From Malacoraja senta (Eukaryota): a DNA stretch of 64,000 nucleotides. Under the pieces are notes generated by a model. It made no database searches. It was not told the origin of the DNA and was given only the letters and a program-made list of their open reading frames with translations. How positions within the stretch are numbered: the stretch's first letter is position 1; each line of letters starts with the position of its first letter. Below are positions 946-52,072 of the stretch, piece by piece. Both the position numbers and the translations under genes were made by a program. The stretch spans positions 174,840,001 through 174,904,000 of the forward strand of contig CM075978.1 in NCBI GenBank assembly GCA_038087875.1. The letters run 5' to 3'.

Positions 946-1103
946 CTAGTGAGGAATTATTTCAACATATGTTAAGGCAGCAGTTATTGGTAAAGGAATA
1001 GAAATGCGTAGAACCCGAAGGGGGATCAACATAGATAATGCATAGATAATGCGAGCAGGGTATGCAACAGGGCTATTCTTGATTTTATGACCAATTATAA
1101 CAG
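946..1103 (-). CDS. Gene A candidate terminal cytoplasmic exon ending in an ITIM-like motif (..TAALTYVEIIPH*)
   Basis: Acceptor gtgacttttccatcag| at 1103 is phase 1, matching the TM exon donor. The frame is open to TAG at 946-948. LTYVEI fits (S/I/V/L)xYxx(I/V/L). Linkage to the TM exon is inferred, and intervening exons are possible. Confidence 0.5.
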
Positions 1104-1762
1104 CTGATGGAAAAGTCACCGAGAGTGGCGGCAAAGTGATTTAAAAATGACAAAAACACCATGTGACGCAGGGGAAGAAGCAGCGCAAGTATTTCTTAGG
1201 GATATTAAAATACTCAAAGCATATGAGGAGACAACAAATAGAATGATAGACAGAGTGAGTAATGTTTTTTCAGCAAGAACGTAGGGAGCATGTGTGAGGT
1301 GTCAATCTCAACTGAGCAGTGTCAAAGCGACAGGAGGCTTTCTATAATTAACTAGCCACCAAGTCGACAATTGGATATCGACTCAACCACTAAAGCAGTG
1401 GATTCAAGTTATGCGAAATGATTGCAACCTACGATCACTGACTACAGCTGGGTAAAGGGATCAAATATACAATGTACCTCTGGGAGCAGGTATAATATGA
1501 GTTATGCTCCATGCCTCACACCAGTTGAAGAATACAAGATTAGTCCCATACCAGCTTGAATAAAAGCACACAATGCTCCAGACCGAGCTGAAATGATTGA
1601 CGAGCGAACAATGGGCATCTATTTGGATGTATATCATCAAACGGCGAATGACTGGGCATGCCCAGAATATATTAATTAATATGATAGAGTATAGTTAGAG
1701 AGACAACGAGTCGTGGAGGTATAGAGCCACGGAAAACCATTTCTTGCGTGACTCTATACGCA

Positions 1763-2081
1763 CGTTGGCGCAACGGTTGAGTTGCTGCCTTATAGCGACA
1801 AAGACCCGGATTCGATCCTAACTACGGGTGCTGCTTGTACGGAGTTTGTAGTTTCTCCCTGTGACCTGGAGTTTGTACGGAGTTTGTAGTTTCTCCTGGA
1901 GCGCCGGTTTCCTCCCACATCCCAAAGACGTACAGGTTTGTAGATGAATTGGCTTGGTAAAATTGTAAATTGTCCCTAGTATGTGTAGGATAGAGTTAAT
2001 ATGCGGGATCGCTGGTCGGCGCTAAGTCGGTGGGCCGAACGGCCAGTTTCTGTGCTGTATGTCTAAACTCTAAAATCTAAA
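1763..2081 (+). mobile_element. HE1-like (V-SINE) elasmobranch SINE
   Basis: tRNA-like head (ggattcgatcc), central ggtttcctcccacatcccaaagacgtacagg block and (ctaaa)n tail. The same family recurs throughout the window. Confidence 0.7.
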
Positions 2082-2905
2082 AACGGAAGCAGACCTTCGA
2101 CTCAACTTGCTCCTGACGACCAAAATGCCGCAACCACGCTAGTCGCTCTTGCACGCATTTGATCGTATCTATGTAAACCTTTCATATACATGTACCTGTC
2201 CAAATGTATTTAACTGTTATATTACGTGCCCCTACCACCTCCCATGCCAGCTCGGTCTGTTTACTCAACACCAAGAAAAAATGTTGAAAGATAGAACAAC
2301 TGTGCGAAGATAACTGAAAGGTCGTGCTAGGAGAGGCAATGAATAGACGTTTACTGAGATTTTAGATGGCAAGGCATAGCGTGGTGGTGTAAAGATAAAC
2401 ATAGTGGATTGTAAATTAGGCTGAGTGCAATAATACTGATCCTAACCAAATTAACCCTGACCCTAACCAGGCAAGAGAAGATTGAAAATTAGTCTGTGAA
2501 TAAAGGATGAAAGTTACAAAGAATCGTTGGTCACTTCTAAATTATTTCCAAGTCCGCATTGAACCATCGTGTTGAGAGTGTAAAGCCTGTGGGTGCTGAG
2601 AATAACTGGAACACCTTGCGTTTTCTCAGATTGTTTTACTGCATATGCTGTTAATGCCCTGAATAAACCGACTTGTTTGAGAAACTCACCACTGCTCTAA
2701 TCAATATTCTTGGTGTATGTCCCATTCTGCGTCGTAATTAGGAGGGCAATTCACAGACGTGAAAGCTAGATACAGGGTATAGGCCAAGCACATAATTCCC
2801 CCATTACGACGTTGCCATAAAGTGGAGTAAAACCCTAACCCACCTATGGCCATTTTTTAAACACACGAAACAGAATAAATACAAGCCGATTGATTAGATG
2901 CTCAC

Positions 2906-3013
2906 GTTTACTTCTCTTGATGTGTCGACACACCATCGTAATGATAAACAGAAGAATAAATATAATTCCACCGGTTGCGCATCCACAAATAAGAAAATAG
3001 GTCGAATTATTGT
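2906..3013 (-). CDS. Gene A transmembrane exon (DNNSTYFLICGCATGGIIFILLFIITMVCRHIKRSK)
   Basis: Acceptor tcttttattttacag|, donor AAAC|gtgagc, 108 bp, phase 1-1. Hydrophobic stretch with no charged residue, followed by a basic stop-transfer. Confidence 0.85.
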
Positions 3014-3124
3014 CTGTAAAATAAAAGAACGAAAAACATATAACTGAAATTAACTGCCAGGTCCAGAACAAAGATTAATTGTACTGATATTTAAGTTAAA
3101 TATTTTACGAATATTCGCAAATAT

Positions 3125-3385
3125 TTAGTTTAGTTTACTTTAGAGATACAGCTAAATAAAATCGCGAGTCCGCGCCGACCAACAATCGCTCGTACACTAA
3201 CTCTCCTGCCCACTGGGGATAATTTACAAAAGCCAATTAACCTATCCAATTTGTACGCCTAGGCAATGCAGAAGGAACCGGAGCGCCCGGAGAAAACCCA
3301 CAGTCACAGGGATAAGGTACACACTCTCCACAGGCAGCACCCGTAGTGAGGATGGAATCCGCGTGTCCAGTGCTCTAAGGCCCTT
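3125..3385 (-). mobile_element. HE1-like SINE
   Basis: Reverse-complement copy of the same family with a (tttag)n tail. Confidence 0.6.
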
Positions 3386-5715
3386 CCACAAAAACATTTT
3401 ATAAGCAAAACGAAATAACGGGAAGTGTCTGAGAGATGTGGTAAATGTAGGTTGATGCGTTAAATTGAAAGATAAGTTACAAAACTAATTTGTTGGATTA
3501 CATTTTTTTGGGGGATTTATGTTAGCCGAAGAGAAAATCAGCGATATTCACAGCACTAAGATGAAACGCACCATGGGAAAACAATATAACTATTGGCATC
3601 GAGATAATGGAAATGGGCAGATCTGTAAATGCATGTGGAATCGGTAAGACATGAAGGCATTTTGAAACGAAATTACCTTGCAGTAAAAGGAGGGGATCGC
3701 AGACAGGAAACAATGTGCATGGTATTGGCTTATGGGTGCAAAGCACTGGAGAACATAACGGCAAATATCAACAAATATATAATAAAATTAGTAAAACGAA
3801 AGGGAATTAAGGAACTAGTGCAATTCCTTCAAAACCAGCGAAAGAGGTCAACATTCTTGAAATAAAACATGTCAATGAAACACTTTGTTCTTCTTCAGAC
3901 TATCAAGTGGTAAAGATATGTTATTCGTTATAGGGCAAATGCATGTACTGAGGCTTCTGACAACTAAAAGATGAGCGTTGATTGCCTGAGAGATCAGTGA
4001 CACTGAAGTTTAAGTTCCATTCAGTAGGCATACCTCAATCTCAAAGTATAAAAGGGTTTATTGAATGCAGCATGCATTGATGATCTCCCTCAGGTACATC
4101 GAAAGAGCTGTGCGATCCTGAATTCTAACGGAGCAATTATTCTTCAACAAGGGTCAAGAGAGTAAGCGCCAAGCATGTTGAATTGTCATATGTACCGAAA
4201 ACAAAGCGCCAATGTAATTCTTAGTTGCAGCAAAGTAATAGATCTGTAAACATAATTCTCTTAGATAACACTATAAAGAATAATAGTTCAACGAAATTAA
4301 AAAAAAAACTGCCCCGCCTGATTTCATGTGCTTGCTTTTCCCCTTAATCTTCACTTCATCAAACAGTCTGATAACCCTGGACGTTACCATTTCCTTCCTC
4401 CCTTAAATGAACACGTTGGCCATCGACTATCGGTGTTTCATATGTACAGGATTCAGCCCTGTAGGCCTAACCGTAAATACAGTTTCAATTTGACAAGTCA
4501 TATATTACGATAAATTTGCCACCTTCCCTATTCACGATCTTAATTTCCAGACGATTGCAATCCCGATCCATGACTAACCTGAAACCTAAGTAATGGACAC
4601 TATCGAAAATGTTGTCGCCAACCACTGGACCGTAGAATTACCTTAAATTGCCCTAGGATTCTGCGCAGCATCGTCATAATTGGATTACGTACATTCTAGC
4701 TCAGAGTGTCTTTCTGGGCACAATTAGTCTTTATCACTAAACATTTTCGAATGAATATTGCACTACTTCAAATCTCCAACTACTAACATAGTATTAATCT
4801 TAAATCATTCCGATTTGCCTACATCTGTGACGCAAACACCCGATAACACATTTGATAATAGGGCTAATACATTTGCAAAGTGATTGTTATTCTATAGAGC
4901 ATAGAGCATAGAGCATCGAATAGTACAGCACGGGAACGGGCCCTTCGGGCCGCAATATTTGTGCTAAAGTTGCCGTCAAACCGAACACATCTCCCTGTAC
5001 ATGATCCATATTCCTCTATTGCCTGTACTTCCATGTACCTCCAACACCACCACCACCACAGGCAAAGCACCAGATCTCCCTTAAGATCTCCATTTTCAAC
5101 GATATATTTAGCCAAGTATTCTCCTGGTCTATCCTCTTATTCCTATATTCATTCGCTAGTGGTACTGGAAGAACTCTCGATTAAACAACTTCAGGGGCAC
5201 TTTGGCCATTGGGCACAAAACGTCTTTTTTCGAAAGCGATCAATATTGGTCACACGATGAAACAAGCTATCCATAGCACCGTAAGCACCGCGGATGCTAC
5301 ACAGCGAATCCATCCTAAATACCAGATGCGCAAGAAGGTAAGTCAGAAGCTGATGTTTAATGCATTTCCTGAAGGAATGGCCGCGAGCGACATTAGACTT
5401 GTTGCTGGTCTCCCACAAAGCGCAGGATCAACATTGCACGTGCCCATCTCTCCTGATACGCATTGTACTTAAATTTACTTAATAATCTAAATGGAACAAC
5501 CAAGTCGGTTAAGGGCTTTATCCGCTCCAACTAGAATTTAGTACAATCTGAAATCCACGCAGTTAATTTTAACAATAGAATTAAGGCAGTAAGCAAGATA
5601 GAATTACAATACTTTTGCAACTTAACCATCATCCTCTCCATCGAAGCCACTTCGCTTTCCAAACACGACTATCTGAATCCGCTACATTCAAACCTTGTAA
5701 TGTTTTCTACGTCAC

Positions 5716-6021
5716 CTGTTTTGGAATCCGGAACATGATACGTTGTAGTCAGTGGAGTAGGAAGAGTGAAGTGCGCCACTTGGCAAGTATAGACCGACCC
5801 GCCCTGCAGTGTCCTTGTTTCCTTTAAATGACTGGAAACTTCATATAATCCATTCATAGTCAGTTTTACCGTTGTATCTATGTCCACGAAAATCTCAATA
5901 CCATTTCGGTACCAAGTAAGGTTAAGTGACTCCGGGTAAAATTCATCCGCTTTACACAAGAGATTCAATGTGGTGGAGTTTTGATCAGGCAGTTTGGAGA
6001 TTCTGAGCTGAGCTGGTGGAA
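5716..6021 (-). CDS. Gene A Ig C1-set exon
   Basis: Acceptor tttacatttgcag|, donor ACAG|gtgacg, 306 bp, phase 1-1. C1 motifs LLCKADEFYPESLNLTW, NGLYEVSSHL and YTCQVAH. Confidence 0.92.
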
Positions 6022-6189
6022 CTGCAAATGTAAAGCAAAAATGTATTTGTGATCCGGAAAACAACTACACGAGCATAACTATTTTGTACAATACTGGTCG
6101 ACGACCTCATAATTACACAGTTATGGGAACGTTCAGGATTAGCATAATTTCGGCTGTTTTTTCGGATATCAACAACATAAATCGTAGGT

Positions 6190-8316: not shown

Positions 8317-8637
8317 CGAAGACTTTGATTCTGGAGCCAGATCCATTCACAATTGCGCTTCCCTGGATTCCCACTCCGCAGTAATAGACTCCAGCATCAT
8401 CTGCATGGATATTCAATAGATGCAAGGAAGCTCCACCTTGTTTAAAACGAACAAATATCTTCCTACTGTCAGAGGCTGTTTGCAGAAAGTTCTGTTCGCC
8501 AAGTTTCCACCAATAAAATTCCACAGGTTGACTATTGTGCGATAGTCCAATAATGCAATAGAGAGTGATGTTTGAATATAAGATCACGTGTTTGCTCGTC
8601 GGAGATTGATCGACTTGGTAGTGAGCATCAACGGCAA
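8317..8637 (-). CDS. Gene A germline-joined VJ-type Ig V exon (NKp30-like)
   Basis: Acceptor ttcttctgctacag|, donor TTCG|gtatgt, 321 bp, phase 1-1. Reads QVDQSP..NITLYC..FYWW..DAGVYYC-11aa-GSGSRIKV. The J-like GxG strand lies inside the exon. Confidence 0.92.
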
Positions 8638-9230
8638 CTGTAGCAGAAGAAAATCAAAAATTATCCCATAACAGACGAGGACAGACACAATTAATCGCAC
8701 TCTTAAAAGATGCGTGAAAGTGGATGTGCGTGCGATATACGGGTGCTGATCACAGAGGGTGTGGGTTAGTAAGAAGATGAAAACAAATGTAAAATCGAGA
8801 AATACCTGCATTTATAATCAAAAGCGACGGTAACAACAGAACCACATCTCGAAAAGGCATACTGAACCATGAAAACCATGTGCTAGGTATTGGAAGTCTG
8901 AAATTCACTCAGGAATTGCTGAAAGCAGCATGTAAGTAAAGTATGATCCGGATAAAGAGAAGTAGAGTTAACTTTTCTGTTCGAAAGACTTGGTCAAATG
9001 GAACATGTTGCACAATGTATTACCATGTCTCTGCTGTGAAAGAAAGGGTACGCGATTTGACGTGGGCTGAAGGAAATGACGTCCGATACGAAATTACCCA
9101 ATTGCAGCTGTTCAAAAATGAGCTTCGGGATAAATTCTGGAAACAACCTGTCGGAAGTGCATGTCATTTTCCGTGATGCAAACACATATTTGCCATCCAT
9201 CCAGACGAATCTTGTCTTTGATGAGTTTAC

Positions 9231-10740: not shown

Positions 10741-10940
10741 NNNNNNNNNNNNNNNNNNNNNNNNNNNNNNNNNNNNNNNNNNNNNNNNNNNNNNNNNNNN
10801 NNNNNNNNNNNNNNNNNNNNNNNNNNNNNNNNNNNNNNNNNNNNNNNNNNNNNNNNNNNNNNNNNNNNNNNNNNNNNNNNNNNNNNNNNNNNNNNNNNNN
10901 NNNNNNNNNNNNNNNNNNNNNNNNNNNNNNNNNNNNNNNN
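10741..10940. other. Assembly gap (200 N)
   Basis: Run of N. Confidence 1.
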
Positions 10941-11719
10941 AAGTTGCGGGCCTAAACTATGTGTATCCATAACAAGGTAAATTAAACATTTTCACTAATG
11001 CCAGCATGTTGTAGTGTAATAAGTATTTAAGGTCTAATCTCGGAGCTGCCTGCGATAACTTTCCGAGTAAAAGTGCTCCGATCGCGGGGCCTATGTACTT
11101 AACATAGTGAAGCCGCGGTCTCAATTAGGAAGCGGCCGATTCGCGAACGCGGAGCCGCGGAGTGTGTTTGGATCATCTCCGCGGGGGGGGGGGGGGGGGG
11201 GGGGAGGGGGGGGCGCTTCCAGGCCCCGACCACGGGAGAAAAACGGACTAATATTCATTGCTTTTTATAGGCTTCCATTGGAGTGAGAAATGGTCAGAAA
11301 TGGCTGATGTTTATGTAGAAATGAATTGGTGTATGTGAACTTGAACTTTAACTAATTTATCTATGGTAGTAACAGTGTTATTCTCATTAACATTAAGAAG
11401 AGGTTGACATTTTATGAATTGAATTCCATGCAGACTTAATGACTATGAGATTTTTTTTTGTAGCCTCTGCCTGACCCTCCACTTGAACTTGAACTAACTT
11501 ATCAATGGACATTAAAACTTATCAAAAGACTTGAAACTGATGAAGAATATTCAGATGAAGATCAGATGTAATGTAAACAAATAAATTGGGGAAATAAATG
11601 ATTATATAAAGTATTATTTTAATGTCAATCGTTTCACTGTTTATTTGGTCAAATTATTTAAACAATGAGTGAATTACTTATGATAATGGCGTGCTGGTGA
11701 ATGACAGTGCAACAGTCCA

Positions 11720-12030
11720 CCCACCCATCCACACATACATACATACATACATACATACATACACACATCCACACACACATCCATCCGTACGCACACTTCC
11801 ATTCATGCACACACACACACATACATGCACACATACATCCGCACACACACATCCACACATCCATCCGCACGCAGACATACATGTACACATCCATGCATAC
11901 ACATACATCCACACACATACATCCACACATACATCCACACATCCAGCCATCCACACATACATACACACTTACATCCACACATCCACAGATACACGTTTGA
12001 CAGGTATACACAGACACACACACACAAACT
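11720..12030. repeat. Compound (CATA)n/(CA)n low-complexity microsatellite
   Basis: Directly visible. Confidence 0.95.
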
Positions 12031-12239
12031 ACAGATACTCAAACAATGCAACACTTTTAGGGTTATTTTAGGTTAAAGGTAATAGGCCTAATTTGCAAAG
12101 GCACCATCGGGGGGTGTCTAACATAAATATAGGCCCATTGTAGCTTAAAATGAATACTCATCGAGTATACATCAGAGCATTCGATTCTTGGTCAGGATGC
12201 GACATTTACATCATAAATAAGACAGGTCTCCTACAGGTC

Positions 12240-12600: not shown

Positions 12601-14483
12601 CAGTGTCATTAAAAAACACACTCACAATTATATTCCTCATATTATTTTTATATAATATAATTATACTTAATTATATATGATTACAGTCATATTTACAAGT
12701 TATATATATATATATAGGCATAATAATATATAGTTTAAATGGACTGCAACACGGAAATAGGCTGCCTATGGTGTAATATGGGCATTGGCCACTAGATGGC
12801 GCTTACTTTCCCGATCTCATTTTCTAATTAGTTTAATTAATTAATGTGCAACTTTTGGCACTGACGAGTTATGACATCCTTCTCAATTACATTTCATCTA
12901 AATCTGTGGAAAATATCATGTAGTTCTGTGACGTGGGTCATGAAAACCGATTTCTAGACACATTTTTGATGCTCGGCCCATAGCCTACTAGCACAATGTG
13001 TCTTTTTTATAAAGCAGCATTTGCTTCTAGCCATAGCCGATTAGGCGGAAACGGAACCAGATAACGTTTTAAGTCCCACATCTTTCATTGCACTAGGAAA
13101 GAGTGTTTCTATCGATGGAGGATAAGCTGGAGGACTAGTACAAAGAACAAAGGGAAACAACTCTGATAGAATAAACCCGTCTTTAAGGTTGCGGTTAGCA
13201 TCAGTTATGCGTCTTTGTCTATGAAGCATGTTGCTAATAATGAGGCTCTGAGACGTATCCAGTAGGCTATGGCATACCAAAAGAGAATGAAAAGTGATGA
13301 GAGGCAGAAATGGGCATTTATGATACACACTGAACTAAAGTCTCAATTACTTGTTGAAGAGGTCTGCAATATGCTTAGATGATTGAGCGTTCTTATAACA
13401 GTTTCATTTGGATTTGGATGGGGAAACAGAATAGTCAGTGGGAGAGGGACGCAACCGGATGCTCAGGGTTTCTCTGAAAAGTCATCAGACAATCTAGTTT
13501 CTGTTCTCCAATGCAGAGGAGACCGATTAGGCTGGTTCAGGAGCAGGACCTCTGCGACAGTGTCATTAAAAAACACACTCACAATTATATTCCTCATATT
13601 ATTTTTATATAATATAATTATACTTAATTATATATGATTACAGTCATATTTACAAGTTATATATATATATATAGGCATAATAATATATAGTTTAAATGGA
13701 CTGCAACACGGAAATAGGCTGCCTATGGTGTAATATGGGCATTGGCCACTAGATGGCGCTTACTTTCCCGATCTCATTTTCTAATTAGTTTAATTAATTA
13801 ATGTGCAACTTTTGGCACTGACGAGTTATGACATCCTTCTCAATTACATTTCATCTAAATCTGTGGAAAATATCATGTAGTTCTGTGACGTGGGTCATGA
13901 AAACCGATTTCTAGACACATTTTTGATGCTCGGCCCATAGCCTACTAGCACAATGTGTCTTTTTTATAAAGCAGCATTTGCTTCTAGCCATAGCCGATTA
14001 GGCGGAAACGGAACCAGATAACGTTTTAAGTCCCACATCTTTCATTGCACTAGGAAAGAGTGTTTCTATCGATGGAGGATAAGCTGGAGGACTAGTACAA
14101 AGAACAAAGGGAAACAACTCTGATAGAATAAACCCGTCTTTAAGGTTGCGGTTAGCATCAGTTATGCGTCTTTGTCTATGAAGCATGTTGCTAATAATGA
14201 GGCTCTGAGACGTATCCAGTAGGCTATGGCATACCAAAAGAGAATGAAAAGTGATGAGAGGCAGAAATGGGCATTTATGATACACACTGAACTAAAGTCT
14301 CAATTACTTGTTGAAGAGGTCTGCAATATGCTTTGATGATTGAGCGTTCTTATAACAGTTTCATTTGGATTTGGATGGGGAAACAGAATAGTCAGTGGGA
14401 GAGGGACGCAACCGGATGCTCAGGGTTTCTCTGAAAAGTCATCAGACAATCTAGTTTCTGTTCTCCAATGCAGAGGAGACCGA
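12568..14483. repeat. Near-identical 957-bp tandem duplication (2 copies)
   Basis: Identical ORFs at 13041-13328 and 13998-14285 (offset 957). The unit starts attaggctggttcaggagcagg and ends gaggagaccgatt. Confidence 0.95.
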
Positions 14484-19472: not shown

Positions 19473-19672
19473 NNNNNNNNNNNNNNNNNNNNNNNNNNNN
19501 NNNNNNNNNNNNNNNNNNNNNNNNNNNNNNNNNNNNNNNNNNNNNNNNNNNNNNNNNNNNNNNNNNNNNNNNNNNNNNNNNNNNNNNNNNNNNNNNNNNN
19601 NNNNNNNNNNNNNNNNNNNNNNNNNNNNNNNNNNNNNNNNNNNNNNNNNNNNNNNNNNNNNNNNNNNNNNNN
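19473..19672. other. Assembly gap (200 N)
   Basis: Run of N. Confidence 1.
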
Positions 19673-19674
19673 AT

Positions 19675-21414: not shown

Positions 21415-21516
21415 CTTTATATATAATTGTCATCACGATGATAACGATGAACATTAAAATTAATACTGCACCTCGGATACTTCCAGCGATTAGAGAAGCT
21501 GATAAACCATCGACAG
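21415..21516 (-). CDS. Gene B transmembrane exon with Arg (AVDGLSASLIAGSIRGAVLILMFIVIIVMTIIYKG)
   Basis: Acceptor cctcccacag|, donor AAAG|gtatgt, 102 bp, phase 1-1. Not in the ORF track; translated by hand from the reverse complement. Confidence 0.82.
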
Positions 21517-24424: not shown

Positions 24425-24727
24425 CTTCATGAGGAACCGTGTAGTTGGCTGTTGCTGGAGTTAGCATAGAACGGTGAATAATTTTACATGTGTAAACGGT
24501 TCCTTCTTTGACTGCCCGTTTCTCCTTTAAAGAGCTGATAACTTCATACAATCCGTCTGCCGTTGAATTTTGTTCATGCCGAAATCCAGATTGGATGACG
24601 GAACCATTTCTATGCCAGGTGAGATTAAATTCTTTCGGGTGAAACGCAGCCGTTCTGCACTGGATTTTCAGGAAATGAGTCGCAGCATTTCTAGATCGAA
24701 CAGATACAATCTTCAGAGGAGAAGGGA
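24425..24727 (-). CDS. Gene B Ig C1-set exon, open frame but acceptor is TG instead of AG
   Basis: Hand translation without stops: VPSPLKIV..KIQCRTAAFHPKEFNLTWHRNG..DGLYEVISSL..VYTCKIIH..NYTVPHE. Donor GAAG|gtaacg. A long pyrimidine tract ends ccttgctg| at the position homologous to the gene A acceptor. Confidence 0.85.
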
Positions 24728-25649: not shown

Positions 25650-25961
25650 CATATACGATCAGTTGCTCTCCTGTTCCCTCCCCAACCGTTCGGCCCGCTT
25701 GTTTTGCAAGACAATAGTATGTTCCGGCGTCCGAGACCGTGACATTCAGCAGGTGAAGGTAGGCGCCTCCTGCCCTTATGATGAAGATTTTCCTGCTATC
25801 TTCTTTCAGGAAGCCTTTATTTCCATCTTTCCACCAGAAAACCTTTAGGTTTGACAGATTTACATTGAAGGGGAAGGAACACCGACAGGTAATGTTTATG
25901 CCACTGATCACCGTCTTCTGAACAACATTCGATATCGTCTTGCCCGACCTGTTCTCAGCAG
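25650..25961 (-). CDS. Gene B germline-joined VJ-type Ig V exon
   Basis: Acceptor ctattgacag|, donor TATG|gtgagc, 312 bp, phase 1-1. Reads NITCRC..VFWW..DAGTYYC-11aa-GTGEQLIV. Confidence 0.9.
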
Positions 25962-26249: not shown

Positions 26250-26304
26250 CCGCATTCAAAATTCCAAGGAAATACATCGTCCAAGGTGACACTTTCAGAA
26301 ACAT
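26250..26304 (-). CDS. Gene B leader exon (MFLKVSPWTMYFLGILNA)
   Basis: ATG at 26304. The donor GCGG|gtaaac is phase 1 and has the same donor hexamer as the gene A leader. Confidence 0.7.
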
Positions 26305-30810: not shown

Positions 30811-31035
30811 GCCAATGAACTGGCCTTGCCACACTCGATTCTTATAGAACGGCTGCGCCATAGATATACGGATTAGACTTTGGAAATCCCGTATACATGC
30901 TGGATCTGTTCTCATCGAATATGGTTCCAATCCATTAAAAAATGTCATTATTATGGACGTCGTTTTGTATGAAAACCAAGTTAATCCTTCAGCAACACCC
31001 ATGTGCTTTACATTTGAAATTCAAACGCCCCTCAC

Positions 31036-31355
31036 AGTATATGATAGGTTCTTGACCGGTTTCATTTAAAACCGTTTCACCCGCAAGTTTGTGGAATGTG
31101 GAAGTACATTCTACTGTCAGCACGCTCACATGCAGCAGCAACAACGGTTGCGCCCCTTACCCGTAATGTTCTGCTATTTCTTCTCAGGAAGTTCTTATTT
31201 CCGTCTCTTTGCCAGTGCACCGTTACGTTAGGTGGATTAAGATCGAAGAGGAAGGGCAATAGGCGTATAAAAGTTTCTGATTCAAGTTGTTTTTGCTGAC
31301 TTTAATGTAGTTGTAAGATTTTTATTGGTTCTTGTATCTTTCTCATTTACAACTT
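31036..31355 (-). pseudogene. Decayed VJ exon most similar to gene B V
   Basis: VTVHWQRDGNKNFLRRNSR aligns with LKVFWWKDGNKGFLKEDSR of gene B. Both canonical Cys are lost, with frameshifts and stops. A remnant GETVLNETGQEPIIY|gtgagg matches GRTVGEGTGEQLIVY|gtgagc. Confidence 0.75.
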
Positions 31356-33706
31356 CTAAAATGTTAGGGTGGAACCGATGCAAATGTCTTTTCAAATTTG
31401 AAGCTCTTGTTGGAGCATTGTTCCAGACAATCTTTCATCATCATCATCTTCTATCATACACTGACACACAAAATGTTTTTTCATCAATACAATACGGTTT
31501 TGTTCGTCACATTGCATATAAAGTGCATGTGAAATGAATTTGCCAGCAGCGGTACAATGAGAAAGAACACACAAAAACACAATAAAAATTTAACACAAAC
31601 ATCCACCACAGCATTCATCACTTTAGTGGAAGGCACAAAATTTGGCCAGTCCTCCTCCATTTTCATCTGTAGTTATTGTAAAACAATCAAAAACAGCAGT
31701 ATCTGGTTGGAGTTTTTTTTGCCATTGAGAAAGGGGCTTTAGATTTCAAATTGGCTAACTTGGGTAATTTTGAATTAACTCAAATGTTTTTCCTGAATAA
31801 GAAAATAATGAATGACATTAGTGATTCATTCCGTGCCTGAAATGAAATTATTAACAGCTTATATACATCACAAATACGAGGTTCAAGTACAGTAAATACC
31901 GGTGGAAGAACGGGCATACTTTACTAACACACTTTAGTAGTCTCTATTCATTGGTAATAATTAAATAATTTAAGGAAACTTGTTGTAAGGGATTAGGGCG
32001 GTCACAGGGATGCAGCCCCCACCCCCGTTAGTTTAGGTTAGCCTGTATTTACTAAACTTCTAGCTAAATGAGCCCTAACCTTTTTTCCTTCATTACCCAA
32101 CCCTTTACTAACCTTTTAACCTAGAAGATTGTGTCAAGCATCCCACTGAAAGTAGAAATTAAGGTTTACATTGACGAAAAATTACCAAATTCTTTGACGC
32201 TTTTCCAAGACTAGTGTTTACTGCTGTTGAGACGGAATTAAACATCACTGACGACTTATTTTGCAGTAAATCATGAAAATTCGTAATCTGTATTCATTTA
32301 TAATATATTTCCCCATAAATGGATGAATAAATTTTCCTTTTGAATTCAGAAATTATCCAGACATGATCACTCAGTAGCAGGTGGAGGGAAATCAGCTGGT
32401 GATGGCGTTTGTTTACGTTTTGTTTCTGATCGTTCTGCCGCCAGATGGCTGCACCGATGTGATTTCTCATTCTCTCGGGTGGAAATAAATGTGCGCGGCA
32501 TGTTTCAAAAGTGGGATTTTTTTCCGATTTACGTAGTCCCTGAAATTTATGTGGAGGTCGGAGTCGGGACTTTTTTTACCGACTCCGGCCCCAGCAGCAT
32601 CAAAATTGCTCCGACTCCGACTCGACGACTCCCACTCCGACTCCACAGCCCTGGATTCAACAATGTATAATTATTTCAATAAGGCGAAGTAACAGATTTA
32701 TTATCGACCTCATTCCCTGGTGGACCTGTATTGATTCTCACCGTACCTTTACTACTGACGATGTGTACCTTACGCGCAAGATCTTATTTAGCAATGAAGA
32801 TGTCTGTGTTTGTTGTCGATTATGAACTCAATCACGGACTCGGTGTTGAAGATATCGGAGAATAAACAATACAAATGGAGCAGTAAAGTGAAGGCGCATT
32901 CTTATTCAGCTCATCATCTAGTAAGGGCTCGGTTCAAATTTCGCTATGGAAACGTGGTGCATTTAATTATATTTTGTTTAAAATTGGGAATTTAGACATA
33001 ACGATAACTAAATTGCGGGGTTGTTCTTGAAATCTCGTGTGACTCAATTAAGCCCTTCATAGGATAACCTTGCCCCAATCGAGGCTATGTAATTCCAACC
33101 CATTAATGTGGTTCGCTTTCAATGTCACCTGAAACATACTAGTAATTGGGGTGAGCTACCCATTAACACAAATTGAAACTATGTTTTGTAAAAAAAAAGC
33201 TGTACCTGCATGCAAAATCCGCAGAGGAAACACGTCTAAAGCTGTGATGAGTTGAAAGCAATCGACAATGAATTTTCTGATCGGAAAGGAAAGAATGCGT
33301 CAATCATGTGGCTCTACATCTGCTAGAATGATCGCCTTCATGTGCAATCACAGAACATTTACGCGCTTACTGGCAGGGACTTTGAAGAATGTAAGCTAAA
33401 GGCGTGGCTGTATCCGGAACAGGTCAGGCAACAATTAGACCGTACGAAAGTAAAAGAATGTAGGCAGCGTAATCATTCACTCAATCAAATGTCCTTATTT
33501 TTATACTCCGCCTGAAACGATTAAACTAACAGGTCTTCATTACCGGCTGCTTATAATCTAATTACCAAACCTTACATGAACTGAAGCGGACCTCCCGAGT
33601 ACATTTTCCCCTCATTTTAGGAAGGCTTATATTTAAGATGTTAAAAGGAGCACCGGCTCACAGATTAACGGCAAGATTATATTAGAGTAAGTAAATGTAA
33701 AGCAAT

Positions 33707-34623
33707 CAATCAATCAGTTTTATTCTTCACTTGCACATAAAGTGCAAGTGAAATGAATTTGCCAGCAGCGGTACAATGAAAAAGAACACACAAAAACACA
33801 ATAAAAATTGAACACAAACAGCCACCACAGCATTCATCACTGTGGTGGAAGGCACAACATTTGGCCAGACCTCTTCCATTGTCCCCCGAGGTCGGGACCT
33901 CAACCTGCAGGCGTCCAGATGTGCAGACAAGGGAAAAAGTCCAGGTAAGTTCTGAATCGGTGCTCCCCTACCGGAGACCGCGGCTTCAGGTTGGTGTAGG
34001 CCGCAGGCCGGCGGTCGAAGATTTAAAGTTCCCGCCACGCCGCAGCTAGAAGCACAGCAGACCTCAGGGCCGGCGGTCGAAGCTCCTCTCCAGGGGTCCC
34101 CGGCGAGGGACCCCGCTCCTGATGGTATGTCCCCGCCGCGCTCGCGGTCGAAGTTGGCCGCGGTCCGGCAGTTGCAGCTCTTCTCCTCCCGGGTCCCCAA
34201 CGAGAGATCCCAGGCCCACGACGCCGCGCCAGCTGGAGCTCCGCAGACCGCGGCTTCAGGCTGCCGGGAGCCAGTGAATGGAGCGTTCCCCTCCGGCGAG
34301 CGCCGGCGATGGCTCGCCCGCTCCACGCCGAGATTCCGCGCTGCGCCCACGGCTGAAGCCGCGGGCACGTCTCCGGGAAAGGCCGCACCGATCCTCGATG
34401 TTAGGCCACGGGGGAGGCGACATGGAAAAAGTCGCCTCTCCGTGGAGGAGGCGACCGAAACGGTTTCCCCCTTACCCCCCACCACCCCCCCACACCACCC
34501 CCACACAAGACACACAGAGGAACATCAAAAACACAAATTTAAACACACTAAAATAAACACAAAAAAAGTAGAAAAAACTAACACGCTGCTGGCAGGGCTA
34601 CCGGCTTGCAACGCCGCCACCGG
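33707..34623 (-). mobile_element. GC-rich non-coding interspersed repeat with (TTGA)n tail
   Basis: Absent from the paralogous site (52861-52880 reads aaagcaataactgcattg). A partial copy lies at 31508-31660. Confidence 0.75.
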
Positions 34624-45284: not shown

Positions 45285-48200
45285 ATGAGGGCCAGGGCAG
45301 TTTACTGTTCTGGATGTCAGATGTGGGAGTTCATGGAGTCCGATACCCCTCCAGACGTCCACATCTGTGCCAGGTGCGTCGAGATGGGGCTATTAAGGGA
45401 CCGTGTTAGGAACCTGGTGCAGCAGCTCGATGACCTCTGTCTGATCAGGGAGAGTGAGGAGGTCATATAAAGGAGTTATAGGGAGGTGGGCACTCCAAGA
45501 CCACGGGAGGCAGACACGTGGGTCACGGTTAGGAAGGGCAAGGGGTAGAGGCAGGGACTAGTGAGTACCCCGGTGGCCGTACACCTTGAAAATAAGTACT
45601 CCTGTTTGAGTACTGTTGGGGGGGACAGCTTTCCTGGGGGTAGCGACAGCGGCCGGGCCTCCGGCACAGAGACCGGCCCTATTGCTCAGAAGGGTAGGGA
45701 AAAGAAGAGGAGGGCAATAGTAATAGGGGACTCTATAGTTAGGGGGTCGGATAGGCGATTCTGTGGACGCAGTCATAAGACCCGGATGGTAGTTTGCCTC
45801 CCTGGTGCAAGGGTCAGGGATGTGTCTGAACGCGTCCAAGATATCCTGAAATCGGAGGAGAGGAGCAGAGGTCATGGTACATATAGGTTCCAATGACATA
45901 GGCAGAAAAAGAGAAGAGGTCCTGAAAGGAGAATTTAGGGAGTTGGGAGGAGAGTTAAGGAGAAGGACCGCAAAGGTAACAATCTCAGGATTACTACCTG
46001 TGCCACGCAACAGTGAGAGTAGGAATGGAATGAGGTGGAGAATAAATGCGTGGCTAAGGAACTGGTGCAGCGGGCAGGGATTCAAAATTCTGGATCATTG
46101 GGACCTCTTTTGGGGAAGGTGTGACCTGTACAGAAAGGACGAGTTGCACTTGAACCGGAGGGGGACCAATATCTTGGCGGGGAGATTTGCAAAGGCTACT
46201 GGGGAGACTTTCAACTGGAACGGTTGGGGGGAGGGACTCAAATAGAGAAAGCTAGTAGACAATGCGGGAGGCAGGAGGCAGAGAAGGGAAGCATTCGGAC
46301 CCAAAATGTAGGGGAGAAAGAAGAAAAAGATAATAAACAGAGAATAAGTGGTGGTGGGTTTCTTAAATGTGTATATTTTAATGCTAGGAGCATTGTAAGA
46401 AAGGTGGATGAGCTTAGAGCCTGGATTGACACCTGGAAGTATGATGTTCTGGCGATCAGTGAAACATGGTTGCAGGAGCGGTGTGATTGGAAACAAAATA
46501 TTCCAGGATTTCGTTGCTTCAGGGGTGATAGAATTGGAGGGGCAAGAGGTGGGGGTGTTGCATTGCTTGTCAAGGAAGATATTACAGCAGTGCTTTGGCA
46601 GGATAGATTAGAGAGCTCGTCTAGGGAGGCTATTTGGGTGGAACTGAGAAATGGGAAAGGTGTAGCAACACTTATAGGGGTGTATTATAGACCACCTAAT
46701 GGGGTGCGAGAATTGGAAGAGCAAATATGTAAGGAGATAGCAGATATTAGTAGTAAGCACAAGGTAGTAATTGTGGGAGATTTCAATTTTCCACACATAG
46801 ACTGGGAAACACATTCTGTAAAAGGGCTGGATGGTTTGGAGTTTGTAAAATGTGTGCAGGATAGTTTTTTGCAGCAATACATAGAGGTACCTACTAGAGA
46901 AGGGGCAGTGCTGGACCTCCTGTTAGGAAATGAGACACGGCAGGTGGCGGAGGTATGCGTTGGGGAGCACTTCGGGTCCAGTGATCACAATACCATTAGT
47001 TACAATATAATTATGGAGAGGGTCAGAACTGGACCTAGGGTTGAGATTTTTGATTGGAGAAAGGCTAACTTTGAGGAGATGAGAAAGGATTTAAAAGGAG
47101 TGAATTGGGACGTTGTTTTTATGGGAAGGATGTAGAAGAGAAATGGAGGACATTTAAAGGTGAAATTTTAAGAGTACAGAATCTTTATGTCCCTGTTCGG
47201 TTGAAAGGAAATAGTAAAAATTGGAAAGAGGCATGGTTTTCAAGGGAAATTGGACACTTGGTTCGGAATAAGAGAGAGATCTACAATAATTATAGGCAGT
47301 ATGGAGTAAATGAGGTGCTTGAGGAGTATACAGAATGTAAAAAGAATATTAAGAAAGAAATTAGAAAGTTAAAATAAGATATGAGGTTGCTTTGGCAAGT
47401 AAGGTGAAAGTAAATCCAAAGGGTTTCTACAGCTATATTAATAGCAAAAGGATAACAAGGAATAAAATTGTTCCATTAGAGAGTCAGAATGGACAGCTAT
47501 CTGCAGAGCCAAAAGAGATGGGGGAGATATTGAACAATTTCTTTTCTTCGGTATTCACCAAGGAGAAGGATATTGAATTATGTGAGGCAAGGGAAACAAG
47601 CAGAGTAGCAATGGAAACTATGAGATTCAAAGAAGAGGAGGTGTGGACACTTTTGAAAAATATGAAAACAGATAAGTCTCCAGGTCCTGACAGGATATTC
47701 CCTCGCACATTGAGGGAAGTTAGTGTAGAAATAGCAGGGGCTATGACAGAAATATTTCAAATGTCATTAGAAACGGGAATAGTGCCGGAGAATTGGCGTA
47801 CTGCGCATGTTGTTCCGTTGTTTAAAAAGGGTTCTAATTATAGACCTGTTAGTTTGACGTCAGTGGTCGGCAAATTAATGGAAAGGATACTTAGAGATAA
47901 TATATATAAGCATCTGCATAAGCAGGGTCTGATTAGGAACAGTCAACATGGATTTGTGCCTGGAAGGTCATGTTTGACTAATCTTGAATTTTTCGAAGAG
48001 GTTACTAGGGAAATTGATGAGGGTAAAGCAGTGGATGTTGTCTATATGGACTTCAGTAAGGCCTTTGACAAGGTTCCTCATGGAAGGTTGGTTAAGAAGA
48101 TTCAATTGTTGGGTATTAATGGTGGAGTAGCAAGATGGATTCAACAGTGGCTGAATGGGAGATGCCAGAGAATAATGGTGGATGGTTGTTTGTCAGGTTG

Positions 48201-50079
48201 CAGGCCGGTGACCAGTGGGGTGCCTCAGGGGTCCGTGTTGGGTCCACTGTTGTTTGTAATGTACATCAATGATCTGGATGATGGTGTGGAAAATTGGATT
48301 AGTAAGTATGCAGATGATACTAAGATAGGTGGTGTTGTGGATAATGAAGTAGATTTTCAAAGTCTACAGAGAGATTTAGGCCATTTGGAAGAGTGGGCTG
48401 ATAGATGGCAGATGGAGTTTAATGCTGATAAATGTGATGTGCTACATCTTGGCAGGACAAATCAAAATAGGACGTACATGGTAAATGGTAGCGAATTGAG
48501 GAATGCAGTTGAACAGAGGGATCTAGGAATAACTGTGCATAGTTCCCTGAAGGTGGAATCTCATGTAGATAGGGTGGTAAAGAAAGCTTTTGGTGTGCTG
48601 GCCTTTATAAATCAGAGCATTGAATATAGAAGTTGGGATGTAATGTTAAAATTGTACAAGGCATTGGTGAGGCCAATTGTGGAGTATGGAGTACAATTTT
48701 GGTCGCCCAATTATAGGAAGGATATCAACAAAATAGAGAGAGTACAGAGGAGATTTACTAGAATGTTGCCTGGGTTTCAACAACTAAGTTACAGAGAAAG
48801 GTTGAACAAGTTAGGTCTTTATTCTTTGGAGCACAGAAGATTAAGTGGGGACTTGATAGAGGTCTTTAAAATTATGAGCGGGTTAGACAGAGTTGACGTG
48901 GATAAGCTTTTCCCATTGAGAATAGGGAAGATTCAAACAAGGGGACATGACTTGAGAATTAAGGGACAGAAGTTTAGGGGTAACATTAGGGGGAACTTCT
49001 TTACTGAGAGAGAGGTAGCTGTGTGGAATGAGCTTCCAGTGGAAGTGGTGGAGGTAGGTTCGATTTTATCCTTTAAAAATAGATTGGATGGGTATATTGA
49101 CGGGATTGCGGCGGCGCGGATTACTGCAGCGGCCCCTACAGCCCGTCTGTCTTTTTTTTCCTTTCTAGTTAAATGTAGTTGTTGGGGTTTTTTTGTACAG
49201 TTTTGATTGTGTATATGTGGGGGGCGGGGGGGGGGAGGGGGAAACTTTAAAAAAATCTCTTCCCTGCACGGGAGACCCGACCTTTTCCCTGTCGGGTCTC
49301 CGTTGTCGTTGGGGCCTAGCTCCGTGGAGCGGCCTCCGACCGGGACGACCGTGGAGCTGCGGACTAATATATTACCATCGTGGGGCTGGCCGGCCTCGGA
49401 GCGCGGGGAGCGGTGGTGAGTCGTTGCTGCTCACTCCGGAGCTGCAGCTGCAGCTGCAGACCGGTGGACTGGGACATCGGGAGCTCGCGGGTCCGGGTGA
49501 GAGACCGCTTTCCGGAGCTCCCGCAACGCAACTTCTCCAGCTCGAGTCGCGGGGTTGGAACGACCCGGAGCGGGGCCGTAAATCGCCCGGATCGGGTTTA
49601 ATGTTAAAGCCGCGGGAAATTCCAGCGCCCGCCGGGGCTCCAACTTGTGACTTTGGGCCCGGAGCGAAGCTGTATACCGCCCGGCGCTGCCTCAACGGCC
49701 GTGGGACTTAACATTGCCCGCCTGGGGCTTCAACATCGGGAGAAAAATGGTAGAAGGGAGAGAAATGACTTTGCCTTCCATCACAGTGAGGAGGAGATTC
49801 GCTGTGATGGATGTTTTTCTGTAAATTGAATTGTTTGTGTGTCGTGTAGGAATTGTTTTGTTTGTATGGCTGTGGAAACGGAGTTTCGTTTGAGCCTCTT
49901 TGAGGTTCAAATGACAAGAAATCAAATCAAATCAAAGGAATGGAGGGTTATGGTCTGAGTGCAGGTAGATGGGACAAGGGGGAAGAAAGAAGAAAGAAGG
50001 GGGAAAAAAGTGTTCGGCAAGGACTTGAAGGGCCGAGATGGCCTGTTTCCGTGCTGTAATGGTTATATGGTTATATGGT
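45285..50079 (+). mobile_element. Near full-length CR1 LINE, frameshifted, 3-prime end split by a nested insertion
   Basis: ORF1 CxxC..CxxC plus GDS/DxxH esterase; ORF2 APE (46224-47135) and RT (47392-49100, SKYADD). The 3-prime UTR resumes at ~49935 and ends (tggttata)n. Confidence 0.9.
49108..49934 (+). mobile_element. GC-rich non-coding repeat with (AAATC)n tail nested in CR1
   Basis: Interrupts the CR1 between ..tatattgacggga and aggaatggagggttatgg.. Confidence 0.7.
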
Positions 50080-50654
50080 CGGAGCTCTTCTTCTGGCGAT
50101 CGTCGGTAAAGGATCCCCGGTTCCGCTCCGCGCTCGCGGCTGAAGCTCCGTGCCCGGTACCCAGGAAAGGCGCACCATTCCAGGATGTTAGGCCGCAAAA
50201 GGAGGGGAGAGGGGCGGGGGAGATGCGACAAGGAGCAAATCGCATCTCCGTCGAAGTAAGTGACCGAAACAATGTTTCCCCAAACCCCCCCCCCCTTCAA
50301 CCCCACATAAACTAACCAAAACACATTGGAAACCAAACGGAAGTTTCACATTTGCTACTTAGAACTATCCTGGAATAATTACTGAATCTATAGAACCACG
50401 GAGGATAATATATAATATATATATTTCAAAATTCTACAAATCTGTGAACATTGAAGACTGAAGAAGCGTTGCGGCCCGAAACGTTGCCTATTTCCTTCGC
50501 TCCATAGACGCTGCTGCACGCGCTGAGTTTCTCCAGCACTTTTGTCTACCTTCGATTTTCCAGCATCTGCAGTTCCTCCTTAAACAACATAGAAGACCAG
50601 CTGATTGTAATTCTTCAATGCTTGGACGCATAAACCTCTTCAATGGTGGTAACT

Positions 50655-50945
50655 GTTCGAGATGCTGCCTCACATTGGCGGAGATCCTAGTTCGATCCTA
50701 ACCTCGTTCGGTGCTGACTGTGTGGAATTTGCAATTTCTCCTTGTAACTACATGGATTTTCTACGTGTGATTTCTTCCTACATCCCAAAGACTTGCTGCT
50801 TTGTTGGCTGCTGTAATTTGCCCTTAACATGCAGGTAGTGGGTGAGAAAGTGGGATAACATGGAACTGGTGTGAAGGGGTGATCGATGGTTGGTGTGGAT
50901 TAGATGCTCCGTTGGGACTGTTTCTATATTCTCTAAATTCTAAAT
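50655..50945 (+). mobile_element. HE1-like SINE
   Basis: gctgcctcaca..gttcgatccta..cttcctacatcccaaagac..ctaaattctaaa. Confidence 0.55.
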
Positions 50946-51523
50946 TCTTTAGTAACATTTAGGTTTTGAAAGTATTTATTTTCCTTTATCCCCTGCGCCC
51001 GTCCTTTATTCAACGGCATATCCATAAGCCTCATTTGTCCTTTTCCCAAGGCAGAGATAATGTACAGTATATGATTATTTGTTGTACGCGTTGGTTTTCC
51101 TCTCCCATTCTAACTGCTGCAATATCTTTAAAGCGCTTAGATTTGACTGGCGTGGCATTTCCTTTCGACACATTCCACGAATCCTATTTATGTATTTCTC
51201 GTTGCGTTACTTTGATATTATACTTTCGATTGGCCATATCATATAAAGCATATGTAAAAGTTAACCGGGTTTGTGACATAAGCGAAGCAGCATCAAATTT
51301 AAACTTTTCATGATACACAAAATGTGCCATATTCTCTTGATAATATCTGCAACGTCTGTGTCCTCCGTGACATTAAGTGTGCTTTTCAGCGCTATGACGT
51401 AAAAAAGTGAAACAGAACCATTCGGGCCACGCGGTATTGCTGCAAGACGGTCGCCAACAAGCTTCACTGCTTGACTCGCTGTCAAAGAGGAAACATCGTT
51501 GAATTTCACCCCCTTTGTTCAGA

Positions 51524-51578
51524 ATGTTTATGTTTGCCGTGCTGCTGTGTCTCTCGATCCTGCACATGAGTTACACAG
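51524..51578 (+). CDS. Gene D leader exon (MFMFAVLLCLSILHMSYT)
   Basis: ATG at 51524, classic hydrophobic signal, donor ACAG|gttaat in phase 1, 170 bp before the V exon. Confidence 0.78.
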
Positions 51579-51748
51579 GTTAATATATTTCTCTCTATTA
51601 AATGAAAATATCAGGGAAAAAGTCAATCCGCGAAAAGTATAAGATGTACAACTCTTACTTTTCGGTCTATCTATCTCAGTCATTTGGAATTTTATCGATC
51701 CATTCAATGTCATTTCACATGTTTAACGTTTGTTTTTAATTCTGACAG

Positions 51749-52072
51749 TTACTGTCGGGGCCTCCTCGTTCAGGGTGCGTCAGATTCCCGATAAGGTAAC
51801 GAAGGTGACAGGTGAAAATGTATCCCTGTACTGTACTTTCCCAATCTTTGGTCAGAGTGCACTGGTGGATGTATACTGGAAGAGAGACGGTCAAGAAGAG
51901 ACTTTGAATCCCACCGCATACAGGAGCATGAAAATGAACAATGTCCTGAAGGGATCTGCCGAATTACATCTGTTGGACGTGAGCTTCCGTGACTCCGGGA
52001 TCTATTATTGCAGTGTGAGAGGCGGAGAAGGAAAGAGTTCCAAAAGCAATGGCACGAGGATTATTGTACACG
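51749..52072 (+). CDS. Gene D germline-joined VJ-type Ig V exon (NKp30-like)
   Basis: Acceptor ttaattctgacag|, donor CACG|gtgagt, 324 bp, phase 1-1. Reads RVRQIP..NVSLYC..VYW..AELHLLDV..DSGIYYC-11aa-SNGTRIIV. Confidence 0.92.

Follow-up and report, generated by a model that had tools for sequence, protein, structure and literature searches.

A cluster of NKp30-like V-C1 receptor genes in Malacoraja senta and a probable paired-receptor family of cartilaginous fish

What kind of receptor is encoded by a germline gene in which a V domain with its own J-like strand (VJ type) is followed by a C1-set domain? Non-rearranging genes of this sort form the class from which antibodies and T cell receptors (TCRs) are thought to descend, and a cluster of them is found in the stretch of Malacoraja senta DNA analysed here (64,000 nucleotides; GenBank assembly GCA_038087875.1, contig CM075978.1, positions 174,840,001 to 174,904,000 of the forward strand; hereafter, the window). 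The window contains three intact V-set exons, belonging to genes which we denote A, B and D, and one frameshifted relic (C), all of which had been noticed in an earlier, sequence-only reading of this DNA. Judging from their exons and from the motifs of their homologues, we consider it likely that these genes belong to paired inhibitory and activating receptors of a shark family related to NCR3/NKp30, the one natural killer (NK) receptor conserved from sharks to humans. The paired inhibitory/activating design is classic for SIRP, KIR and NITR, and its activating half is known also from NKp30.

The chondrichthyan family and its predicted signalling types

We ran a profile built from the three V exons against 1.84 billion representative proteins and carried out two word-index searches in addition. 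The V profile retrieved giant multi-immunoglobulin (Ig) proteins along with dozens of proteins of 220-450 amino acids (aa) with one strong V match, and the profile and word-index searches together yielded more than 40 chondrichthyan V-C1-transmembrane (TM) proteins, found in sharks, in rays and in a chimaera. Every named member belongs to a cartilaginous fish, the genera being Heterodontus, Scyliorhinus, Heptranchias, Mustelus, Cetorhinus, Carcharodon, Chiloscyllium, Hemiscyllium, Rhincodon, Stegostoma, Mobula, Pristis, Hemitrygon and Callorhinchus. In the plan shared by the homologues, the leader precedes a V domain that closes with NGTG-x-L-x-V; a C1 domain starting with VPPTPL, a TM segment and a tail with such motifs as LTYAAL, TVYAQTKQG and TEYAEI follow. 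In each species the family members reside on one chromosome-scale contig. In Callorhinchus, one member is encoded by 7 exons within 5.5 kb, three of them small tail exons and the others leader, V, C1 and TM, and additional V/C1 genes of the family lie to either side of this gene (MU249845.1, 15.60-15.62 Mb); this compact locus provides a template for exon finding in larger genomes. Across the family, gene spans range from 5 to 22 kb, as illustrated by the 5.5-kb Callorhinchus gene and the 22-kb white shark gene for P0183.

The exons of genes A and B follow the same plan, with a leader, a V domain that includes the J-like strand, one C1-set domain and a TM segment, all in phase 1; gene D shows the leader and V exons of this plan, and the V domains of all three genes fall inside the family clade. 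The earlier claim of germline, non-rearranging genes that combine a VJ-type V with C1 and TM exons is borne out, and the close homologues are all from cartilaginous fish. The window adds members to a family that is already present in the public protein sets of many species and does not hold a new kind of gene. Annotation serves this family badly, with six or more unrelated names for one family: NCBI designations include SIRP-alpha-like, tapasin-related-like, NCR3 ligand 1-like, Ig lambda-1 light chain-like, CD276 homologue, MHC class II beta-like and uncharacterized, and the C1-less isoforms are named NCR3-like. The prediction that such genes would be annotated as SIRP-like or NCR3LG1-like agrees with these public names.

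Some of the public gene models are themselves irregular. P0033 (Heterodontus), P0060, P0177 and P0148 carry N-terminal extensions that match the reverse transcriptase (RT) of long interspersed nuclear elements (LINEs) or other junk (residues 31-187 of P0033 match the RT copies of the window), and by their sequences these extended models look like annotation chimeras in loci rich in transposable elements.

To place the window genes within the family, we built a maximum-likelihood tree of 63 V domains, 53 of them chondrichthyan; the tree is unrooted, includes primate NKp30 and lacks other V families. The 53 chondrichthyan V sequences form one clade (support 93/92). Within it, the V domain of gene A groups with proteins from Heterodontus, Mustelus and Scyliorhinus (99/92; identity up to 60%), that of gene B with proteins from Heterodontus and Chiloscyllium (100/99; 59% identity) and that of gene D with P0061 (96/85; 56% identity), a protein with a TM segment and tail identical to those of Mobula birostris P0074 and taken here as a Mobula isoform. 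Identity among the V domains of A, B and D is only 26-33%, compared to 56-61% with their shark or ray counterparts. Because of this low mutual identity, the three genes represent anciently separated subfamilies lying side by side, not a recent local burst, and the earlier idea of an expanded family is weaker to that extent. By these sequence comparisons, A, B and D are assigned to three old, well-supported subfamilies.

TM and tail features were tabulated for 44 family proteins. Most of them combine an uncharged TM segment with a tail of 70-190 residues that contains one to four motifs resembling the immunoreceptor tyrosine-based inhibitory motif (ITIM; here [LV]xYAxL and TxYAxI). Altogether, an ITIM-like motif is present in 27 of the 44 proteins, and 24 have both an uncharged TM segment and at least one such motif. 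P0060 and P0105, by comparison, have an arginine in the TM segment and tails of 10-15 residues, and another group of members is characterized by a TM segment of the R-x-IL...DH type and short tails. In Heterodontus, P0060 and P0053 have near-identical ectodomains; P0060 has the TM arginine and a short tail, whereas P0053 has glycine at that position and an ITIM tail. A core clade of the family (P0181-P0186) shows neither an ITIM tail nor a charged TM segment. This clade is the one most similar to mammalian NKp30. Its members are V-C1-TM proteins in which a WWIY-type uncharged TM segment adjoins a juxtamembrane stretch rich in cysteine and the tail is basic and devoid of ITIMs, features by which this clade appears to be a third signalling style within the family. 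In another member, P0078 (450 aa), the module of TM segment plus ITIM tail is tandemly duplicated in the model, which reflects either a real internal duplication or two merged genes.

We propose that the family consists of germline-encoded, non-rearranging leukocyte receptors and that their genes form a tandem cluster, of which the window covers a part. The general exon plan would comprise a leader, a VJ-type V, one C1-set domain, a stalk/TM exon and some three short exons for the cytoplasmic tail, with phase 1 throughout. As suggested by the motifs, the ITIM-tailed majority would recruit SH2 phosphatases, and the minority with a basic TM segment and a short tail would signal via an adaptor bearing an immunoreceptor tyrosine-based activation motif (ITAM), as NKp30 and SIRP-beta do. 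Under this scheme, gene A would be of the uncharged-TM type and apparently intact from V through C1 to TM, with tail exons that probably lie before the window start; gene B, with its TM arginine and V-TM(Arg) product, would be activating; C would be a dead V exon, and D the 5' end of a gene of a third, more NKp30-like subfamily.

Gene models in the window

The family exons were located by tblastn of four Ig-like frames against the window, which placed V domains at about 8.5, 25.8 and 51.9 kb, C1 domains at about 5.9 and 24.6 kb and a degenerate V at about 31.1 kb. Pfam was applied to the V and C exons, and the exon boundaries were read base by base. The three intact V exons match the Pfam V-set and Ig_3 models with E values of 2e-12 to 8e-7. 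In A, B and D alike, the leader exon is exactly 55 nt long and ends in a phase-1 GT donor, all exon junctions are in phase 1, and the J-like last strand is encoded within the V exon and runs directly into the GT donor. This strand reads NGSGSRIKV in A, EGTGEQLIV in B and SNGTRIIV in D, the last one without the first glycine of the GxG motif. Pfam and the exon reading are in line with the earlier count of three intact V exons and one relic with the J-like strand inside the V exon, and an own leader is confirmed for A, B and D. Neither a heptamer of a recombination signal sequence (RSS) near any V exon nor a heptamer/12-or-23/nonamer pair anywhere in the window was detected, and the previously noted lack of RSS at the V ends is thereby upheld. 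The V, C1 and TM exons found for the three genes have open frames, canonical cysteines and tryptophans and consensus splice sites, with the C1 acceptor of gene B as the sole exception.

Gene A lies on the minus strand. Its leader exon (8806-8860) consists of the ATG, an 18-aa hydrophobic leader and the first base of the next codon, followed by the donor CAG/GTATTT. The V exon (8317-8637; 321 nt, phase 1 at both ends) encodes both cysteines, a WW motif, YYC and the J-like strand (Pfam V-set 1.8e-8, Ig_3 2.8e-9). The C1-set exon (5716-6021; 306 nt, phase 1 at both ends; Pfam C1-set E 1.5e-12) is bounded by the acceptor CAG and the donor G/GTGACG. In Pfam, the C domain reaches 48 bits as C1-set, far above its scores with the CD80-like set (14 bits) and the butyrophilin Ig-C set (13 bits). 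The stalk/TM exon (2906-3013; 108 nt, phase 1 at both ends) encodes an uncharged membrane span and, at the exon end, a basic stop-transfer stretch. This TM segment is of the 'GC-x-GG' type, and in the nearest homologues such a segment is followed by ITIM exons. A putative last exon at 946-1103, with an open phase-1 frame that includes LTYVEI, came from the splice-site scan; however, it matched neither the homologue tails in tblastn nor a hidden Markov model (HMM) of 24 family tails, and the exon implied by the sequence-only reading, which let the cluster begin at position 946, is only a candidate. Given the family exon plan and the mere 2.9 kb left after the TM exon, the tail of gene A may lie beyond the window start.

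Gene B, also on the minus strand, has a leader exon at 26250-26304 (55 nt, 18-aa leader, donor G/GTAAAC), a V exon at 25650-25961 (312 nt, phase 1 at both ends) and a stalk/TM exon at 21415-21516 (102 nt, likewise phase 1 at both ends); the membrane span encoded there contains an arginine, which aligns with that of Heterodontus P0060. The C1-set exon at 24425-24727 has retained its open frame and the Cys/Trp/Cys set (Pfam C1-set E 1.1e-9), but its acceptor site (24730-24728) is CTG, where the equivalent in gene A is CAG. Between the upstream stop and the C1 exon there is no AG usable in frame, and the only nearby AG (GAAG/ATT) leads to a frameshift and a stop after six codons. Because CTG replaces CAG and an in-frame AG is lacking, the C1 exon of gene B cannot be spliced in frame. 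By contrast with gene A, for which a phase-1 continuation from V into C1 and TM exons stands as originally described, gene B retains such a continuation only without C1. Splicing of its V exon to the TM exon is in frame and gives a V-stalk-TM protein with the arginine in the membrane span, and the sole in-frame product predicted for gene B is this NKp30-shaped V-TM(Arg) protein. The acceptor change would make the C1-less form of gene B constitutive. This is the specific contribution of the window: a single base change would turn a V-C1-TM gene into a V-TM(Arg) gene in which the frame of the orphaned C1 exon has stayed open. Elsewhere in the family, exon skipping stays in frame because all exons are in phase 1, and NCBI lists in-frame isoforms without C1 (LOC119970986 X1/X2 of Scyliorhinus canicula; P0073/P0075) as well as isoforms without the TM segment (P0162, P0168 and P0185).

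Gene D is found on the plus strand, with a leader exon at 51524-51578 (55 nt; donor CAG/GTTAAT) and a V exon at 51749-52072 (324 nt, phase 1 at both ends; Pfam V-set 2.4e-12) that encodes an NKp30-like F-G region (AELHLLDV ... YYC ... SNGTRIIV). In the 12 kb of the window downstream of this V exon, there is no C1 or TM exon. The relic C (31031-31253, minus strand) is a B-like partial V exon that is frameshifted, has lost both cysteines and lacks partner exons. Upstream of it, a short hydrophobic open frame at 31560-31670 (minus strand) recurs 2 kb further on, at 33727-33850 (minus strand), with the pattern M-E-E-x-WPN-x-VPST-x-VMNAVV...FLLCF, and probably is a repeat element rather than a leader exon.

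Cytoplasmic exons were sought in the window with tblastn of about 90 homologues, an ITIM regular expression, a phase-1 splice-site scan and the HMM of 24 tails run against six-frame pieces; none of these yielded a credible tail exon for A, B or D, and the best HMM match lies on the wrong strand and overlaps the TM exon of gene A. Similarly, a regular expression for an alternative TM exon of the 'R-x-IL...DH' type found none over the window. Two assembly gaps interrupt the sequence, one at 10741-10940, 1.9 kb upstream of the gene A ATG, and the other at 19473-19672, 1.7 kb downstream of the gene B TM exon and 90 bp away from where a degraded LINE RT fragment ends. Both gaps are clear of all exons found and of every reading frame; the second could conceal a further, short exon at the 3' side of gene B.

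Apart from the V-C1 family genes, the gene content of the window consists of retrotransposons only. The GC content is about 40-46%, and the sequence is vertebrate DNA in which LINE-type retrotransposons are abundant. A near full-length LINE is located downstream of gene D (54666-58603, minus strand) and encodes an ORF1 with a GDSL-esterase domain (317 aa), an endonuclease open reading frame (ORF; 471 aa) and an RT ORF (520 aa), the latter two being separated by a single stop. More degraded copies are found at 37.3-40.4 kb and 45.5-49.2 kb (plus strand), together with an RT fragment at 28.8-30.1 kb. The region between A and B contains two identical 95-aa open frames (13041-13328 and 13998-14285, minus strand) spaced by 957 bp, which looks like a young tandem duplication; a 37-bp piece of it is found again near 10.2 kb. 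Long, imperfect CA/TG-type microsatellite tracts at 11658-12071 and 53125-54201 give rise, on both strands, to pseudo-ORFs rich in cysteine and valine or in histidine and threonine.

Affinity to NKp30 and rival explanations

The evidence on an affinity of the family to NKp30 is mixed, and the similarity is clearest for gene D and the core clade. The AlphaFold model of the gene D V domain (pLDDT 89) was compared with 550,000 Swiss-Prot models using Foldseek, and NKp30 occupied ranks 2, 4, 6, 8 and 9, with entries from macaque, rat, human and chimpanzee at 23-28% identity (27-28% for the four primate entries) and TM-scores of 0.78-0.80. These matches include the highest identities in the list, the remainder of which consists of receptor-type VJ domains (CD79B, CD8, PD-1, Ig kappa and TCR alpha). 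In BLASTP, the gene D V domain is 30% identical to primate NKp30 over 114 aa, that is, over the whole domain. For the core-clade protein P0184, human NKp30 is the best single-domain match in the PDB (E 6.7e-6), and the only non-chondrichthyan matches of the core-clade profile are primate NCR3 sequences. A search of the ESM Atlas with the gene D V domain returned generic V-set clusters (antigen receptor, PD-1, CD22 and nectin) and nothing specific. The suggestion of an NKp30-type V domain is accordingly supported for gene D by the Swiss-Prot structure matches, five of the top nine, and by BLASTP, but finds no support for A, D or the family profile in the PDB sequence searches, where NKp30 was outside the best 60 matches for the gene A V domain, the gene D V domain and the 41-sequence family profile. 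The PDB sequence lists are swamped by multi-domain proteins and antibodies and are weakly informative, and gene B V was not searched singly.

Published work on the MHC class III region, in which NKp30 lies next to AIF1, DDAH2 and PRRC2A, offers a further point of contact. In the supplement of PMC10751288, five NCR3 genes are annotated between AIF1 and DDAH2 in the white shark major histocompatibility complex (MHC), and three adjoin DDAH2 in the MHC region of the sawfish; the NCR3-annotated loci span 3-42 kb. The LOC numbers and names of the family homologues are absent from the NCR3 supplement of that paper (PMC10751288). The family described here most probably is what the literature calls the shark NCR3 family. 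Under that name, the work of Kinlein et al. (2021, Immunogenetics 73:333) is cited in PMC12227049 and PMC10450919. Kinlein et al. reportedly described eight divergent, MHC-linked NCR3 subtypes in the nurse shark, from which NCR3 genes are deposited as GenBank MT914154-MT914161.

Besides these PDB lists, several observations weigh against a paired family of NKp30 relatives. The V domains of A and B resemble mammalian NKp30 in BLASTP only in the F-G strands, and primate NKp30 falls outside the family in the V tree, which, as mentioned, is unrooted and contains no other V families. Tetrapod NKp30 has neither a C domain nor an ITIM tail, whereas the default of the family is V-C1-TM with ITIM-like tails. 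The V-only ectodomain of NKp30 is not what the window offers, A and B having C1-set exons and most homologues being V-C1-TM proteins, and gene B comes to this form solely through its broken C1 acceptor. As for the basic TM segment and short tail of NKp30, gene B has the TM arginine and no tail exons were found, and the TM segment of gene A is uncharged. As the window contains no credible cytoplasmic exon, the inhibitory status of gene A is inferred from its TM type alone, and inhibitory and activating roles in general are read from motifs only. Finally, the CTG of gene B might be allelic or stem from a sequencing error, or the gene might be no more than a pseudogene. Weighing these points, we conclude that the genes belong to a distinct chondrichthyan family with a V domain related to that of NKp30 and an ectodomain built like an antigen-receptor chain.

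One rival explanation is that the whole cluster is decaying and functionless, with B broken, C a relic, D a stranded V exon and the tail of A lost among retrotransposons. The dead C1 acceptor of gene B, the presence of relic C, the lack of C1, TM and tail exons within 12 kb of gene D, downstream of which a full-length LINE is inserted, and the failure to find tail exons for A or B all fit this scenario. Nevertheless, we consider it unlikely: the exons of A, B and D keep their frames, cysteines and tryptophans and all splice sites except one acceptor, the TM arginine of gene B is conserved with its shark counterpart, and, with family genes of 5-22 kb and NCR3-annotated loci of up to 42 kb, the missing exons may simply be off-window. 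Alternatively, the genes might be the cartilaginous-fish counterpart of the SIRP family and not of NKp30. The best non-immunoglobulin PDB matches of the gene A C1 domain are SIRP-alpha (E 1.6e-13) and SIRP-gamma (E 8.6e-13), at least eight members are automatically named 'tyrosine-protein phosphatase non-receptor type substrate 1-like' by NCBI, and the paired ITIM/charged-TM design is the same at the family level, the window itself showing only the charged-TM form, in gene B; the tail motifs LTYAAL and TEYAEI, presumably, also are like those of SIRP-alpha. However, the exons of A and B and the homologues show one C1 domain in place of two, SIRP V domains are not among the best V-domain matches in the PDB and Swiss-Prot searches, and SIRPs do not appear in the top 30 Swiss-Prot structure matches of the V-C1 model described below. 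The automatic names, moreover, point in different directions (SIRP, tapasin-related, B7-H6, Ig lambda, CD276 and MHC II beta), which suggests a roughly equal distance between the family and each of the C1 families, and a SIRP identity seems to us decidedly unlikely.

The V-C1 model in question, an AlphaFold2 prediction for the gene A counterpart P0036 (pLDDT 89), brings two further candidates into play. Its best Swiss-Prot structure match is B7-H6 (25% identity, TM-score 0.69), followed by PD-L1, CD276, butyrophilins and Skint proteins; the public name of several members is NCR3LG1-like or CD276 homologue, and PD-L1 is the best single-domain PDB sequence match of the gene D V domain (E 5e-7). 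Taken at face value, these matches would make the genes B7-family ligands of the B7-H6/NCR3LG1 type, that is, the partner of NKp30 and not the receptor. This is very improbable in our view, as the B7 ranking may stem from the extended inter-domain geometry of the predicted model and no B7 protein is among the top 30 Swiss-Prot matches of the gene D V-only model. In addition, the G strand of the family carries the GxG/NGTG J-like motif, the Pfam scores favour C1-set by a wide margin over the CD80-like and butyrophilin sets, and the pairing of short-tailed members that have a TM arginine with ITIM-tailed ones is a receptor hallmark. In the PDB, on the other hand, the best matches of the P0036 model are antibody light chains and a TCR beta chain. 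Along with the family C1 profile, for which Ig heavy-chain constant domains and UrIg2 come out strongest, these matches speak for an ectodomain built like an antigen-receptor chain. Some members, moreover, are automatically named Ig lambda-1 light chain-like. Germline-joined Ig clusters are known in cartilaginous fish, and one might ask whether the genes are ordinary germline-joined Ig light-chain or TCR-like clusters. With light-chain identity of only 19-24% and V domains that cluster with the receptor family in the V tree and not with Ig, we regard the chance of this as negligible; germline-joined light chains were rejected, as TM exons are present, followed in homologues by ITIM tails, and RSS are lacking from the window. 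Membership in UrIg or UrIg2 was rejected as well, the family being multigene and having a single C1 domain and signalling tails.

Wider reading and comparison with known systems

The combination, across chondrichthyans, of an NKp30-like V with a C1 domain in inhibitory and activating versions bears both on the origin of antigen receptors and on the history of NKp30. Tentatively, and with more doubt than confidence, we suggest that the NKp30 lineage originally was a VJ-C1-TM receptor with ITIM or charged-TM signalling, that cartilaginous fish keep it as a large paired family, and that the V-only NKp30 of tetrapods arose through loss of the in-phase C1 exon. Gene B would replay this loss by a single A-to-T change of the acceptor, and the C1-skipping isoforms would replay it at the RNA level. 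In PMC12227049 and PMC10751288, UrIg and UrIg2 are the only elasmobranch VJ-C genes listed, and NCR3 is treated as a VJ gene. Provided that the C1 domain of these NCR3-family genes is unreported, the search for the pre-RAG antigen-receptor ancestor would gain a candidate in this family, a VJ-C1 receptor that is membrane-bound and equipped for signalling.

Among known systems, NKp30, the top Swiss-Prot family for the gene D V model, shares with the family a single-exon, non-rearranging VJ-type V of the form AEL-h-h-DV ... YxC ... NGT-x-L/I-x-V and, with the activating members, the TM arginine; the differences in the C domain and tail have been considered above. SIRPs likewise combine a VJ-type V with C1-set domains and either ITIMs (SIRP-alpha) or a charged TM segment (SIRP-beta). 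They differ by having two C1 domains, the family V shows no SIRP-specific similarity, and the family was seen only in chondrichthyans in these searches. B7-H6 resembles the family in its two-domain V-C ectodomain, similar predicted shape and single-pass TM segment, whereas the family has a V domain of the receptor (VJ) type, a C domain of the C1 set and members with a charged TM segment. The elasmobranch UrIg and UrIg2 (Flajnik et al. 2023; PMC12227049) are non-rearranging too and join a single-exon VJ to C1-type domains; however, UrIg is a secreted protein with three C domains, nine or more are present in UrIg2, and each is described as one gene per species (PMC12227049), whereas the family described here has one C1 domain, is membrane-bound and multigene and carries signalling motifs. 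The NITRs of bony fish, which are weak matches of the family profile (E 1e-4) and show distant similarity to it, are, like the chondrichthyan family, multigene and non-rearranging; they have a VJ-type V and include ITIM-bearing as well as charged-TM members, but they consist of a V or of a V plus an I-type domain, with no C1-set domain.

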